NCBI GenBank assembly: GCA_904063045.1
Contig: CAJFCJ010000007.1
Coordinates: 1,141,448-1,205,447, forward strand
DNA: 64,000 nucleotides
Source of the DNA: Dimorphilus gyrociliatus
Lineage: Eukaryota; Animalia; Annelida
Reading direction: 5' to 3'
Shown here: one piece after another, positions 2,870 through 15,900 of the stretch
How the letters are laid out: every line of letters starts with the position of its first letter
Numbering within the stretch: the first letter of the stretch is position 1
Made by a program: the position numbers and the translations under genes
The notes under the pieces: model-generated
What the model was told of the DNA's origin: nothing
Databases searched by the model: none
The model's input: the letters and a program-made list of their open reading frames with translations, nothing else

Positions 2870-8015
<5,146 letters not shown>

Positions 8016-8801
8016 AAATACTACAATATTCACAACTGTGTTTCCATGTACGTAGTTGATTAATAGACCTTATAGTAATTCTGACAATCTTACTCTTTGT
8101 AAATTTAATGCATACAGAAAATGAAAAATGTCCTAATAATTACCATCAATGTGTCCTTATTTGTCCTTTAAAAATTTACATTGTGTAACATCTGTAAGAA
8201 TGTGAGAATTTCTATTAGGTCCTGCGTGAGTGGGATGTTGGGTTTTTGAATACAAACCAGTTAATACGAAAATCTTTACACTTAAAGTTTTAAGCGTAGG
8301 TTACTGTATATGTAAAGAGTGTCATTAGGTAGATTATTGACGATAAGACTTCAAATATGATTCAATTGGCGGATATTTAAGCCTACATAAATCATATAAT
8401 AGGTTTCGATAACTATTACTCGCCGAATATTACCTTGAACTAGATGTCGCTCCCTGCTAAAGTTGATACGAAGCAGAGGGGACATTTATGTCATACATTT
8501 AACGAAAGTCAGCGATGTTCACTTGAAGATAACATATTCGAGAGATACAATTCATTCTAGGCCTGCATTCTTACGCGAAACCTAATCTCCTCTGAATTTT
8601 AAATACTGTAATCGATTTTTTAATTGAGTTAGATTCCTTATCAAAAATACTCTAATCAAGTACCAAACAGGATATCCTTGGAAAGAAAATACTTTTTGCA
8701 GAATAGGTAGTATACGATTAAAAAAGGAAAAAATCCCTGGAGAAATTACTAAATTGATTTTTAAACAATATTTCAGTATTTGGAAGGAAGATCTAAAAAA
8801 A

Positions 8802-11800
8802 ATGAAAGCAACCGTGGTCGTCATTGTAATTTTGATCGATATTCTAAGTTTTGGTTAGTATAGCTTTTTTTAAATGGTAATACTATATAAAGCCATTTTT
8901 TTGTCGCTAATATTTAACAAGTAAAAAAAGTCTATTTTCTTGTTTCTTTAAAGAAGCTTCATAAAAAAGGCTACTTTAAACAAGGACACAATTTAACTGC
9001 TTTAACTATTGAAATGTTTATACGTGTCCTTTAAGAGTCTTTGTCATAGAAATTTCACCTAATCTTCACATACACTTGCATAATTCACTAAATATGGAAA
9101 TAAGATTCTCCATTAAACACTACTGTCATATAAATTTATAATATAATACTCAACATCTATTATAACAGGACTGTACATAAGAATAATGAAAAATGCCGTA
9201 TATTCACAATAGGCCCATGCCTTTGTTTTACACCCATTTCTGAACAATAATTAAATATAAAGTAGAAAAAAACTATGATATGTCTTTTTCATTAATTTGA
9301 TAGTGAAAGGCATTAGAGAAGATGCCGACTATTGGGGAAAAGTTGCTGATGAAGAACTTAATATAGCTCTAAAAGTTGATCTGAAAAAGGAAAAGGCAAA
9401 GAATGGCATCCTATACCTTGGAGACGGAATGGGATTAACAACAATTGCTGCGGCTAGGTGGTACGATATCCAAGAAAAAAAGCTAGAGGGTTCGAGAGAG
9501 TCTTTACTTTCTTGGGAAAAATGGCCTTTCGCTGCCTTGTCGAGGACGTATAATGTTGACTTGCTTACTCCAGATTCTGCGGGAACAGCAACTGCATTTT
9601 TGACTGGATCAAAAACGGTTGCTTCCGTTGTTGGTGTTGACGCAAATGTTAAAATAAAGAATTGTTCTACAGTTGAAAAAGCAAAAATTAATTCAATTGC
9701 TAAAAGTGCAATTGCGGAAGGAAAAAGCGTAGGCGTTGTCACTACAACAAGAATAACTCATGCTACACCATCGGCCTTATATGCTCATGCAGCTTATCGA
9801 TATTATGAAGGCTCGGCCGATTTACCAACTGATCAAGTTTGCGAGGATATCGCTAGTCAGCTGATTAACGGCGAAGTGGGAAAGAAATTAAAAGTTATGT
9901 TGGGAGGTGGAAGATATAACTTTATTCCAAAGGGCACCTACGATGCAGAATATACAAACAAAGCGAGTAAGAGGAGCGATGATCTGAATTTGATAGAAAA
10001 ATGGAAAAAGATGAAGAAGGAGGACGATAATTTAACAGACGAACAATATAAATATGTGCAAACTTTGGATGAATTTAATGCAATCGACACAGATAAAGTT
10101 GATTATTTACTCGGTCTATTTAATCCGAGTCACATGCAATACGAAGCGCATAGAAGTGAAGATATTTGGAAAGAACCAAGTCTCTCCGAAATGGTTGAAA
10201 AAGCGATTAAAATTTTAAAGAAAAATCCCAAAGGCTATTTTCTATTGGTAGAAGGAGGCAGAATAGACCATGGTCACCACGACAATCAAGCCTTTCTATC
10301 TATAAAGGATGCATCAGCGTTTAACGAAGCCATAGCACACTCTCAACAATTCATATCCCATTCTGATACTCTTCAAGTAGTGACCGCTGATCATTCGCAT
10401 TCATTCACTGTTAGCGGCTATTCAAAAAGAACTGATAACATACTAAAGTTTGCTACGTCATCTAACGAGACAACTCTTGCAGACGATAAGAAACCTTATA
10501 ATATTCTTGCCTACACCACAGGTCCAGGCTATAAAACACATAGGAAAGATGGTCCTAGAAAAGATTTAACAAAAGTTGATACCAGTATGTAAATTTTAAC
10601 TAATCAATTTTTCCCAATAGATAGATTATTAAGCACGTTTAAATCTTTTAGCCGATCCTGATTTCGTATCAGATTCTTTCCTTCCCAGACAATGGGAGAG
10701 TCACGGCGGAGAGGATGTGGCTATTTACGCAAAAGGGCCGTGGGCTCATCTATTCCATTCAGTTCACGAACAAAATTACGTAAATCATGTTTTTGAGTAT
10801 GCAATGTGTATTGGAAAATATAAAAGTTCCTGTAACAAAACTCCAGCTGGAACTAAAATTGGTATGAAACTTTATTTTAATTTTTAAAACTTGCATAAAT
10901 ATCTCTTTTTCAATAGATAAAAATTCTAAGGAACATTCGGAATATTGGAAAAAGATCGGTGAAAATGAATTAAAAATTGCTCTCGAGAAGAAGAAACTAT
11001 CGCAAAAGGCTAAGAATACCGTATTATTCGTTGGAGATGGAATGGGTTTATCTACAGTTACAGCCGCAAGATGGCACCACGCTCAGAAACGACAAATAGT
11101 TGGATCTAAGAGTCAACTGCTTTCGTGGGAGGACTGGCCTGATATTGGTCTATCTAGAACCTATACGGTCGATTCTTTGACAGCTGATTCGGCGGGATCG
11201 GGTACAGCCTTACTTTCTGGTATTAAAACTTATTCGCAGGTATTGGGGGTTGACATGAACACGAAGAAAGAGATTTGCTCAACAACGAATGATGGAAAAA
11301 TTGATTCCATTGCTCAACACGCTCTGAAAGAAGGAAAAAGCGTTGGAGTAATAACGACAAGCAGAATTACAGATGCAACTCCTGCTGCACTTTACGCTCA
11401 CTCAGCCTTCAGGGAATGGGAGGGATGGGCTCCGACACCATGTAAAGATATTGCTACTCAATTAATTGAAGGAAGCGTCGGGAAACAATTGAAAGTTATA
11501 CTCGGAGGCGGTAGGAAGAGCTTTATCCCAAAAGATAAGAGAGACGAGGAAGATATAAGTGAAATGAGTACAAGAAAAGATAACAAAGATCTAAGAGAAA
11601 CTTGGAAATCAATGAGAAAAGACGAGGGTCTAAAAGATGATAAATTCGCTTATGTAGAAAGGATGAACGAATTTAATTCGATCGATCCGAAAAAAGTTGA
11701 TTATCTCTTAGGCCTATTTTCCGGAGCTGAAATGAATTACGAAGCAAACAGACTAAATGATACATGGGGCGAGCCAAGTTTAGGCGATATGGCAAAAAAA

Positions 11801-12531
11801 GCAATTGAAATCTTAAAGAAAAATCCGAAAGGTTATCTTTTGCTGGTAGAGGGTGGTCGCATTGATCACGGACATCACCATAATCTTGCCCATTTAGCTC
11901 TAGACGATACATTAGCTTTACACGACGCCGTCGAGAAAGTTGAAAAAATGACGAAAAACGACGATACTTTAAAAATAGTAACAGCCGATCATTCACATTC
12001 ATTTATCATTAACGGATATTCGGATAGGAGCGAAAGTATTTTCGGTTTTGCAAGGAATCTAGAAGGCGACAGATTAGCCGAAGATAAAAAGACATATACA
12101 ATCTTATCCTACACAAATGGGCCTGGGTACCACTCAAATAGAATTAATGATATAAGAAAGAACTTGACATTAGAAGAAACAAGTAAGTTTCTTACAATCT
12201 TCATGATGTAATTAAAGGGATTCTTAATGATAAATATCTTTTTTATTAAAATCAAGCCAACCCTCATTATGCATTCGACTCTGGCGTCCCACTTGAGGAT
12301 GAAACTCATAGCGGTGAAGACGTTGCAATCTACGCTAAAGGACCATTCTCACATCTGATTCACGGCGTTCATGAACAGAATTATATACCTTACGTAATAA
12401 GTTACTCAATGTGCATCGGAAAGTACAATAAGGCTAAACATTGCTCCACTAATGGGAATGATAAATTAAATTCCATGAATATTTATAAGCTTTTAATTAT
12501 TTCTGTAATTCTTCTTTTTCATGCAAAATAA
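8802..12531 (+). CDS. Alkaline phosphatase with two tandem catalytic domains, a signal peptide and a C-terminal GPI signal (~1027 aa, 5 exons)
   Basis: Exons 8802-8853 (signal MKATVVVIVILIDILSF), 9304-10584, 10652-10861, 10917-12182 and 12257-12531, all phase-1 junctions and in frame. Each domain has GDGMG, DSAG (catalytic Ser), EGGRIDHGHH, TADHSH and E(S/T)H(G/S)GEDV. Hydrophobic tail LLIISVILLF. AP identity is certain; the single-chain fusion is inferred from splice signals. Confidence 0.85.
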
Positions 12532-12600
12532 AAAAGGGCATCAACAAGAAAAAATGATTATCTTTTGAATGCTATTCTCCAATTAATGAAAATTTTCTTC

Positions 12601-12634
12601 TCTGTCTGCCTGCCTGTCTGTCTCTCTTTCTTCT

Positions 12635-12691
<57 letters not shown>

Positions 12692-12695
12692 ATCT
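12601..12695. repeat. (CT)n microsatellite with a degenerate TCTG/CCTG lead-in
   Basis: Direct reading; lies between the convergent 3' ends of the AP gene and AXDND1. Confidence 0.95.
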
Positions 12696-12928
12696 TTTTT
12701 TTTCTCAATTTTTCCTTTAAAAATAGTTCAATTTTATTTGTTTATTTTTAATTATTCATTATGCAAATTGTATATATTCACAAAAAAAATCCACCAGTAA
12801 TTTGACACAGTAGAATTCCAAAGCAGAATAAAGTTTTGTTGGCAAACATCTCATTTTATTGTTTTAGCTTGGCACACTTAAATTTTAAATATATATTATT
12901 ATATTAATAAGAAAATACTGATCATATC

Positions 12929-15900
12929 TTAAACTTCTCCTCCGCCAGCTTCTTTTCTTGGTGTAGATTTCTTCTTAGAGCTTTTACTAATTGTTGATTT
13001 AGACTTTTCTTTCTTTTTCTCTTCTTTTTTCTTCAAACTCTGATTATCAATGGTTGATTGAGTTGATTGTTTTGTTGCTATTTCAGATATAACAGATTCC
13101 GGCGCAATAGTCGTCTCACCGTCTGTTGTTGCTACTGTTGTTGCATCGCTCTTCTTTAATTTTCTATCTAATTCACGGACTATTTCATTTAAATTTCGTA
13201 ACTCCTCTTCCAAATCTATAACTCTCTCTTCGGCCTTTTGAGCTCTTTCCTCTGTGTTTCTGTATAATAAAAAAAAAACAAAACTATGTTGTTTTTATTT
13301 ATCTATTTTTCATTGATATTTACATCAGATCTTCTTGCAATTTTTCAATCGTTTGTAACGTATCATAGGCCTTTTCAGATTGTTCTGTTTCCGGTTTTCG
13401 TAATCCCCTCTCGTCCCTTGTTCCCTGTAGAGATTTAGGCCTTGTTGTTTCGTCAAACCCTATCGCTTCTATTTCTTCCTTCTCCTCTTTTTCATTATCA
13501 GTTAGATCATCACCGCTATCTTCTTGCTCTTCTTGCAGATCTGCTTTTTCCTCCTCGACATCTTTCTCATCCCCTTCTTCGCCGTTTTTAGTTTCTTTAT
13601 TTTGGGTTTCTATTTCGACATTTTCGCTTTGTCCCTCTACAACCCTCTCCTCTTCAGCAGAAATTGTCTCTGAAGCCTTAAGTTCATCCCCTTCATGTTT
13701 CGTTTCGACTACCTGTGGAGGGGTTGACTGCTCCGTATTTTCTTCGTCGACTCTTGCTAAACCTTTTTGACCTTCTTCACATTCTACCACTGAAGCAGAT
13801 AGGGGCTCTTTCTCACCGTCTCTGTCCGATATAGTTTCCTCTTTCTCTTCCAATACTGTTGAATGAGTAGACAATTTAGTTTCTTGCCGCGAGAGTAATT
13901 CTTGGCCCACGGAAGATGGTGTTTCGCTCTTTTTCTCAACAACAATTTCCTCCTGTAATTCTTGTCCTGTTAACGCATAAACGAGAATTTTTGCAGTTGC
14001 TATCCATTCCTCAAATTCCGATTTCATCCTCGCCAAATCTATTTGTTCTTGTTCTGGATTTTCTTCATATTTAGAGAATTTTTGCTGAACAATAGCTTGA
14101 ACTATTCCTGAGCAGCATCTTAATGAATTATTAAAAATTGATCAAACTTCAATAAATAACATAAATAAATAAGACGAAAGGCAAGATGATTATTATTGAT
14201 AACTTACTGGACGAGATAGTTGTTGAAAGTCCGAAGTTTCGTAAATAGTTTTAAGACTGTATTACATAGTTGTTGATTGGTCTGTTTTAGAGTCTCTGCA
14301 TCATTGAGTAACTCGGGAGAATGATTCGATTTGTCAGGAGCAATTTTCAATAGAATTTGTACCATCCATTGTACCATATCGGTATGCAAGGAAGAAACCT
14401 GAATTAATATAATAAATTAGTTTTGACCTATTTCGTTTCTCTTAATCATTAAATTATTCATTAATACCGTTTGAATTAGCCTAGCATTCTCACTTTCTAT
14501 TCCATTCATTGTTGATGATAACCATTTTTGTGTTTTGGTCATCATGTCGTTTATCTCTAAACTATTTAAAAAATGTTAATTATATGTGTCGAATAGAGTG
14601 ATAGTATTCTTTTCATTTATATAAAACTAACTGTTTATGGTCTTCTTTATCAACTTCTTTTTTAGTAGAGCCAATTAAACCGAGAATCTGAGCGCACCAA
14701 CTCGAGTATTCCCCAAGAGTACTATAAAATCGAAGCCAATCCATATCGGGCAATGGGTTATTACCTTGAACGGCAACATGCAATTTCGTTTGCCAATGCT
14801 CAAAGCTGCCAGATAAATTAATGAGAAGTCTCGCGACCCCATTTTCTCCGGTCAAACGAACCTGACACTGTTCATGCATAGCTGTAATATCAAGGTTTAA
14901 TTCCTGCATGGCCTTCTGATCGCTATCTGAGTGACGATCGAATACCTCCAAGGCAATGTCAGCCCAGCCTTCCATATGCGAATGTGCTTCCTTCAATAAA
15001 TCATGATTATTTAATAGTTCATCACCTCCAAACGTCTCTAATTGTTCGGTTACCCTCTGAATATAAATGGAAAATATGTACAATCGTTGGGTAATTAAGT
15101 AATAATTAATAAGATATTAACCTGTCCCCATTTTGTAAGTCCTTCGAGAGCAAATCTTACTTTTTCAGGAGTGGGAGATTTCTCTACAAGTCCGTCAGAG
15201 CCCCTAAATATTTTTCGTATATCATTATTATCTTATTTAATTTTTAGGGAATTAGGGATAAATTGAATAACTTACAGGACAGTCTTATCAAAATCATCTC
15301 TGATAAATCTGACCCCTTCGAATATTCTTTCGACAATTTTCTTCATCCTTTTTTCATTGTTCTTCATATTCCCTTGAAATTCGAACATTAGCTCTCTGAA
15401 CTTATCAATATGCATTTGCAATTCCGCAAGCATGGAAGAGTCGGTTCCACTTAATAATATTGTAAAATGTTTAGCTAATTTAACCCATGCTTTTTCAGCC
15501 ACATGCAAACGTCTGGCATTTGTTAATTCGTGTTCTTCAGTCACCTTGAAGGAAATCAAGATGTTACGTAACACTTTTACAACTAATAGAAAATTTGTTT
15601 ACATAAAATTTATCTACTAACTTTCAACGCCAAACTGAAAGCAGCCTGACTCCACGTTTCCTTTTCATTATTTAACGCTGTCATATCTTTCTCCATTCTT
15701 TTTCTCTGAAGTTCGTACAAGTCGTGATATTCAGACAATAGATCCGTGTTTTTCTTCGAATCTAAAAGGGCCTCTTTTAATTCTTCCTTCGCCTCTGTAG
15801 CGGCTTTAGTAACATTTTCATCGTGTTCTCTAACGGTCAATAATTCGTCTGTTAATTGGGTCACAGTTTTTTTAAATTTTAAAAGCTCATCGGTTAATCT

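Follow-up and report, generated by a model that had tools for sequence, protein, structure and literature searches.

Alkaline phosphatases (APs) are obligate dimers, active only as dimers, and a locus in the annelid Dimorphilus gyrociliatus raises the question of whether both partners of such a dimer can be supplied by a single gene. The window analysed here is a stretch of 64,000 nucleotides (assembly GCA_904063045.1, contig CAJFCJ010000007.1, positions 1,141,448 to 1,205,447 of the forward strand), in which two AP reading frames follow one another at positions 8802–12531; unless stated otherwise, coordinates are those of the window. They could be read as two neighbouring genes or as one. We find that the two copies are joined in one spliced mRNA, and we regard it as quite probable that the locus is one gene, not two, in which duplication and the loss of two targeting signals have led to one mRNA and one chain that pairs with itself.

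Gene structure and transcript evidence

The coding exons were re-derived by hand from the sequence (8802–8853, 9304–10584, 10652–10861, 10917–12182 and 12257–12531) and sum to a coding sequence of 3084 nt, or 1027 codons and a stop, with 0 stops inside the exon translations. The four coding introns, of 450, 67, 55 and 74 nt, are each GT..AG and each in phase 1 (8854–9303, GTTAGT..TGATAG; 10585–10651, GTATGT..TTTTAG; 10862–10916, GTATGA..CAATAG; 12183–12256, GTAAGT..ATCAAG). Those of 55–74 nt fit the median intron of 66 bp given in the D. gyrociliatus genome paper (PMC7854359), and intron 1 is 6–8 times the length of the others. The features are listed below; UTR denotes untranslated region, X1 is the transcript source described after the list, and a slash within a peptide or codon marks the position of an intron.

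8675..8706, + strand: 3′ end of a 5′UTR exon; the loose-end consensus of the transcript contig, TCCTTGGAAAGAAAATACTTTTTGCAGAAT, equals window 8675–8704
~8707..8776, + strand: putative 5′UTR intron of 70 nt, GTAGTA..TTTCAG, placed from the loose end of the contig at 8775 and the splice sites
8777..8853, + strand: start-codon exon (ATG at 8802) with the sole signal peptide, MKATVVVIVILIDILSF, ending in phase 1; placed from the sequence, the transcript contig and a hydropathy of 2.35
8854..9303, + strand: intron 1, 450 nt, skipped in the X1 contig
9304..10584, + strand: domain 1 main exon, 426 whole codons, PF00245 positions 1–362 (Pfam profile and alignment)
10585..10651, + strand: intron 2, 67 nt, at T/DPDF, skipped in the X1 contig
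10652..10861, + strand: domain 1 C-terminal exon with the Zn1 His (ESHGGEDV) and the last disulfide pair, ending ...CNKTPAGTKI without a hydrophobic tail
10862..10916, + strand: junction intron, 55 nt, GT..AG, phase 1, skipped in the X1 contig; if it is retained the frame stops at ...KIGMKLYFNF
10917..12182, + strand: domain 2 main exon, 421 whole codons, without a signal peptide or an in-frame ATG before GDGMG; Asp at the His153 position (ITDATP)
12183..12256, + strand: intron 4, 74 nt, at T/NPHY, homologous to intron 2 and with 75% nucleotide identity to the relative described below
12257..12531, + strand: domain 2 C-terminal exon, ending in the hydrophobic tail ...STNGNDKLNSMNIYKLLIISVILLFHAK, a putative anchor signal; stop codon at 12529–12531
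12532..12660, + strand: 3′UTR under the transcript contig, which extends 60 nt beyond 12600 into a (CT)n tract

Transcript evidence was taken from a single public run, X1 (2017, 60 Mb of contigs), which is the sole public run containing the locus; its assembled contigs were compared with 3851 nt of the window. One X1 contig of 3522 nt, with a mean depth of ~207, is 100% identical to the window, with no mismatch, and skips 450, 67, 55 and 74 nt exactly at the GT..AG borders; the interval 10862–10916 is skipped with 209 nt on the shorter side of the contig. Because every intron is removed exactly, we take X1 to be cDNA, and the skipping of 10862–10916 therefore means that both copies are cis-spliced into one mRNA. 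The contig also holds ~255 nt upstream of the first coding exon, joined across the 5′UTR intron, of which the last 30 nt can be placed on the window. There were no alternative joints in the X1 assembly, the fully spliced form being present alone and in one unbranched contig. The only other piece at the locus is a second X1 contig of 167 nt (depth 2.4), lying within intron 1 at 8963–9129, which may come from unspliced precursor, from carried-over DNA or from a small transcript of its own.

The junction 10861/10917 is in frame: ...CNKTPAGTKI is followed by the split codon G/AT (Asp) and then by KNSKEHSEYW, and the peptide across the two copies includes AGTKIDKNSKEH. The first in-frame Met of the domain 2 main exon is the M of GDGMG. 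A preliminary description of this DNA, made from its letters, had proposed that two AP reading frames were joined in this way by a 55-nt GT-AG intron (10862–10916) into a protein of ~1027 residues, and had named RNA across 10861–10917 as one means of checking it. The spliced contig links the copies by skipping exactly that interval, the junction proved exact on base-by-base re-derivation, and the length agrees. The contrary case, namely transcripts ending in ...KIGMKLYFNF together with a separate signal exon for copy 2, was not seen; the contig is fused, and copy 2 has neither a start codon nor a signal exon.

Two complete domains from an internal duplication

All four domain exon translations match the Pfam family PF00245 above its gathering cut-off of 24.4 bits (359.9 + 39.8 bits for domain 1 and 354.1 + 48.9 bits for domain 2), and each exon pair covers profile positions 1–423, so that two complete domains are present. 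At the protein level the large exons are 54% identical (E = 2e-169) and the small exons 58% identical, and the introns at T/DPDF and T/NPHY have equal positions and phases in the two domains. These positions, phases and identities agree with the proposal, made on the strength of the same-position introns, that a phase-1/phase-1 two-exon module had been duplicated, and the expected double match to the Alk_phosphatase profile is what Pfam returns. In addition, the acceptor of the junction intron is homologous to that of intron 1, both lying in phase 1 and 10 residues before the conserved Trp of the N-terminal helix; domain 2 therefore begins where a mature single-domain AP begins after its signal-peptide exon. 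The protein of the species itself is absent from the protein collections, in which the best matches are genomic reading frames of relatives, with 72–74% identity.

Targeting signals and linker

High mean Kyte–Doolittle hydropathy is confined to the first exon (2.35) and the last 15 residues at the C-terminus (1.63), and the linker of ~19 residues between the domains is hydrophilic (−1.77). The C-terminus follows the pattern of small residues, polar spacer and hydrophobic tail (STNGND-KLNSMN-IYKLLIISVILLFHAK), which is kept in the relative, and this tail probably directs glycosylphosphatidylinositol (GPI) anchoring. A single mRNA carries both domains in frame, with no internal start, signal peptide or anchor signal. 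The sole signal peptide had been placed on domain 1, with none on domain 2 and no GPI tail after domain 1, and this arrangement stands: the first exon is hydrophobic, copy 2 lacks a start codon and signal exon, and the exon ending ...CNKTPAGTKI runs into the hydrophilic linker.

Active sites and metal ligands

The active site of AP, in PLAP numbering, contains the nucleophile Ser and Arg166, with D316, H320 and H432 as ligands of Zn1, D42, D357 and H358 as ligands of Zn2, and D42, S/T155 and E311 as ligands of Mg. We called the corresponding residues from alignments to solved TNAP chains. The nucleophile Ser92, Arg166 and the Zn1, Zn2 and Mg ligands are kept in both domains, and both contain the motifs GDGMG, DSAG, A(Y/F)R, VEGGRIDHGHH, TADHSH and E(S/T)H(G/S)GEDV. 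Also present in each are the trans-acting Tyr (GY), which reaches into the site of the partner, and the two disulfide pairs. On these alignments both active sites look competent.

Two features depart from the animal enzymes. Domain 2 has Asp in place of the second-shell His153 (ITDATP; 11369–11371), as do domain 2 of the relative and the second domain of P0002, a further tandem AP discussed below; among the fetched proteins, 353 of the 393 motif hits have His at this position and nine have Asp. At the Ca (M4) site, TNAP E274 is replaced by N in domain 1 and S in domain 2, and D289 by E in both, so the Ca site of both domains differs from that of TNAP. Neither the residue at 153 nor those of the Ca site are diagnostic of the family, within which they vary. 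The claim that all catalytic and metal ligands were kept thus holds for Ser92, Arg166, Zn1, Zn2 and Mg, and fails for His153 in domain 2 and for two Ca-site ligands in both domains. With Asp153 adjoining the Mg site of domain 2, it is plausible that the two sites differ in metal handling or kinetics, and they probably do so.

Conservation in a relative

Among database proteins the nearest is P0001, with 72% identity, a raw reading frame on a genomic Logan contig referred to here as L001. This contig is syntenic with the window, having a nucleoside transporter nested in ATP synthase beta followed by two AP copies, and its exon layout matches, the signal exon being followed by two exons for domain 1 and two for domain 2, with a junction intron of 61 nt (GT..AG, phase 1) between the two pairs. 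The linker length is unchanged, and copy 2 has no in-frame Met before GDGMG and no signal peptide. Protein identity between the two species is 72–87% per exon. The ratio of nonsynonymous to synonymous substitution (dN/dS) is 0.08 for the main exon of domain 1 and 0.12 for that of domain 2, and ranges over 0.08–0.17 across both domains, with synonymous sites near saturation. The shared layout and low dN/dS therefore show the layout to be old and both domains to be under purifying selection, and this conservation rules out both an artefact of assembly and a copy in decay. The junction introns of the window and L001 gave no alignment above chance (p = 0.37). For a third species (P0268; ERR14224704/5), synteny with ATP synthase beta can be seen, although its contigs stop short of domain 2.

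Other tandem enzymes and a probable independent origin

An exhaustive profile search of the protein collections with domain 1 brought up several long proteins, each matching in two places. P0002 (1044 residues; Logan SRR19644540, locus L003) is a clean fusion, whose contig starts with a cap-switch cDNA adaptor and holds an unbroken reading frame of 3135 nt, and which therefore represents a real mRNA. It resembles the window protein in having one signal peptide, two complete domains, a hydrophilic linker of ~20 residues, one hydrophobic C-terminal tail, and Asp153 in domain 2 only. It differs in that it is ~42% identical to the window protein and that its own two domains are mutual closest relatives. 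In the maximum likelihood tree the first domains of the window and the relative pair, as do their second domains, and the two pairs are sister (100/99); the domains of P0002 are sister to each other (100/100) and group with the annelid Capitella and two further sequences (93/88). A shared origin with P0002 was considered and rejected, forcing the second domains together at a cost of 147 log-likelihood units (approximately unbiased test, p = 5e-75), with the qualification that the tested group was named after inspection of the tree and that concerted evolution within a chain could mimic the outcome. The tree and the test therefore indicate that the window and P0002 fusions were most likely independent events.

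Asp153 is found only in the second domain of both of these independently fused APs (residue 681 of P0002, in the motif 676–684; domain 2 of the window and of L001). Against a background of ~2% Asp the coincidence looks non-random, in a post hoc test on a small sample.

A third tandem AP, P0004 (1015 residues, from a Logan contig of 3188 nt), begins with a signal peptide and has a transmembrane segment at its C-terminus; several metal ligands are missing from the first domain (GGGMD, LIGHGHQ, TANHGH) whereas the second is intact, so that one half of this fused pair is dead. A further tandem AP, P0036, looks bacterial. The predicted proteins P0153 (Watersipora), P0154 (Culicoides), P0151 (Branchiostoma) and P0156 (Leptosia) likewise contain two PF00245 domains each, but they have an anchor tail and/or a second signal peptide between the domains (13-residue hydropathy 2.5–3.0), and by their sequences they are probably neighbouring genes merged by gene prediction.

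The preliminary description had also suggested that a tandem AP had not been described in animals. A full-text literature search turned up no account of tandem or two-domain alkaline phosphatases, and in that respect the suggestion holds; the sequence collections nevertheless contain at least one other clean animal fusion, the full-length cDNA P0002. The architecture is new for a very well-known enzyme, yet it is not unique, having arisen convergently in at least one other animal lineage.

The encoded protein, its origin and alternative readings

We expect translation into one secreted chain of 1027 residues, predicted at ~115 kDa before glycosylation, which would consist of the signal peptide, AP domain 1, the hydrophilic linker, AP domain 2 and the hydrophobic tail. 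Because APs are obligate dimers, an intramolecular pseudo-heterodimer is most likely the working form, the two domains packing through the usual dimer interface on a single membrane anchor; with both domains complete, the linker flexible and the interface residues intact, the chain most likely pairs with itself. An AlphaFold model of P0002, built from a 52-row alignment, has a mean pLDDT of 87 and a pTM of 0.89 over 1044 residues, with only the linker (520–535) and the termini disordered. The pTM therefore points to a fixed arrangement of the two domains, and a linker of similar length is compatible with their packing. In a Foldseek search with this model each half matches single AP chains (target TM ~0.9), a result that is uninformative on domain packing.

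The origin of the gene may be traced in three steps. A three-exon gene (signal, main and C-terminal exons) would first have been duplicated in tandem; a phase-1 donor just before the anchor signal of copy 1 would then have come to be used with the normal acceptor of the copy 2 main exon; and the intervening sequence would subsequently have been lost. Copy 1 would thus have lost its C-terminal membrane-anchor signal and copy 2 its signal-peptide exon, leaving the short phase-1 intron that now joins them. We also considered whether the junction intron is a relic of the anchor-tail coding sequence of copy 1, which is possible and unsupported, there being no nucleotide similarity above that of shuffled sequences (p = 0.55–0.99).

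The alternative that survives best, although we think it unlikely, is that the locus comprises two functional genes or a single gene with more than one product; the fused mRNA would then be one isoform, and single-domain proteins would pair as ordinary dimers. A soluble domain 1 would then arise by retention of the 55-nt intron, and a GPI-anchored domain 2 by splicing of the signal exon to exon 4; all introns are in phase 1, and the module of exons 2 and 3, at 1491 nt a multiple of 3, could be skipped in frame. Reading through the junction donor in L001 (intron 6902–6962) gives GIYFALFSLLLLINFLVYF, a hydrophobic tail of 19 residues (hydropathy 2.19) with a stop directly at the acceptor. This might serve as the anchor signal of a domain-1-only form or be a relic of a lost signal, and T-rich introns yield such peptides by chance. 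Rare forms, moreover, cannot be shown to be absent from contigs. Against these points, the fully spliced form is the only one assembled, in one unbranched contig at a depth of ~207. The read-through tail of the window, GMKLYFNF, has eight residues and is not hydrophobic (0.27), the junction intron has no nucleotide similarity to anchor-tail coding sequence (p = 0.55–0.99, as above), and copy 2 has neither a start codon of its own nor space for a promoter.

Still less probable is a fused transcript in which one domain is a decaying passenger, so that a chain with one working domain pairs with other chains. Decay after fusion does occur, the first domain of P0004 having lost metal ligands, but here every catalytic ligand is kept in both domains and a dN/dS of 0.08–0.17 between two species indicates strong purifying selection on each. 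An operon-like pair, with copy 2 as a separate cistron whose acceptor (10916/10917) takes a trans-spliced leader, would suit the very short gap between the copies but is highly improbable and we reject it, because the contig shows cis-splicing from 10861 to 10917, the first in-frame ATG past the acceptor lies in the catalytic GDGMG so that a signal peptide would be lacking, and neither spliced leaders nor operons nor trans-splicing are reported for D. gyrociliatus in the genome paper (PMC7854359).

Several points weigh against a single self-pairing chain. The RNA nature of X1 follows from the exact GT..AG skips rather than from a record of the kind of run. Contigs lose rare variants, so that minor isoforms may exist, among them retention of the junction intron (intron 3), giving a soluble domain-1-only protein, and skipping from exon 1 to exon 4, in frame, giving a domain-2-only GPI protein. 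The direct evidence is at the level of the mRNA. The hydrophobic core of the C-terminal tail is short and contains Lys. The structural model is of P0002, not of the window protein, and its putative dimer-like packing was read from the pTM; pairing between two chains (D1:D1′, D2:D2′) is an alternative. Taking both sides together, we still judge the whole sequence of duplication, loss of two signals, one mRNA, one chain and an intramolecular pair to be the probable explanation.

A more speculative extension, which we offer tentatively, is that natural single-chain AP heterodimers arose repeatedly and that fusion freed the second site to specialise, giving an obligate asymmetric enzyme. If so, one site might be tuned to another metal regime or substrate, or act as an allosteric partner, a division of labour that a homodimer cannot reach.

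Flanking sequences

Between the two species, the final 130 nt of coding sequence and the 70 nt of 3′UTR that follow are ~93% identical (window 12400–12600), and the proportion of synonymous differences (pS) in exon 5 is 0.31, compared with 0.61–0.92 in the other exons. Further conserved 3′UTR blocks, TTAATTATTCATTATGCAAATT, ATATTCACAAAAAAA, GTAATTTGACAC and CTTGGCACACTTAAAT, extend up to ~12890; in L001 the region is at 8447–8800. This conservation suggests a constrained RNA element or an overlap with the 3′ end of a convergent minus-strand gene ending at 12929; an Rfam scan of 8000–13200 gave no match. Within the 3′UTR, a (CT)n microsatellite of ~80 nt (12600–12695), in which the transcript contig ends, is missing from the relative. 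Upstream of the 5′UTR, a conserved block at 8470–8560 (L001 ~4250–4400) lies ~450 nt past the stop of ATP synthase beta (8015) and near the expected start of the transcript contig if the UTR exon is contiguous; it is likely to be a promoter or start region. The nucleoside transporter nested in an intron of ATP synthase beta is itself conserved (window ~4489–8015, L001 673–3766).

Comparison with known systems

The closest known enzymes are the vertebrate GPI-anchored TNAP, PLAP and IAP (PDB 7yiv, 1ew2 and 4kjd), with which each domain aligns end to end (E = 1e-96 to 1e-98, ~45% identity). The nucleophile Ser, Arg166, the Zn1, Zn2 and Mg ligands, the crown-domain Tyr, two disulfides, the signal peptide and the hydrophobic C-terminal tail are all shared. 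In contrast, the vertebrate enzymes are one-domain chains forming non-covalent homodimers with two anchors, whereas the window encodes, in one chain, two domains that have diverged to 54% identity and share a single signal peptide and a single tail, with Asp153 in domain 2 and two changed Ca-site ligands in both domains.

Communication between the subunits of AP has long been debated. The solved structures include a mixed dimer of wild-type and T155V subunits (PDB 3bdg), and such artificial mixed dimers have so far been needed for tests between subunits; a natural chain that fixes two different sites in a 1:1 ratio would allow each to be mutated separately in one construct. With respect to the sites themselves, the Asp153 of domain 2 is as in Escherichia coli AP and is combined with His at the position equivalent to 328 (DHGHH), an arrangement matching that of the E. 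coli K328H mutant. The 153/328 mutants (K328H, PDB 1anj; D153H, 2anh; D153G, 1ajb, the title of which ties residue 153 to Mg binding) are engineered bacterial homodimers, whereas the same configuration is natural here and lies in cis with a His153 domain.

The locus offers an evolutionary path that can be read at the level of exons, with one anchor signal and one signal-peptide exon lost, to an end state, the single-chain fused AP, that appears to have been reached at least twice. It also suggests a practical rule for telling a true fusion from a merged gene model, namely the absence of a hydrophobic segment between the domains. Somatic angiotensin-converting enzyme likewise has two homologous catalytic domains derived from a tandem duplication. 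Two homologous catalytic domains are also found in the dual-domain carbonic anhydrase of the giant clam (PMC5879104). In both, as here, an internal duplication has put a pair of active catalytic domains into a single chain that is secreted or membrane-bound; they are, however, unrelated families whose single domains are not obligate dimers, and in them the fusion replaces no quaternary interface, whereas the tandem AP would be a clear case of a quaternary interface turned into a domain interface.

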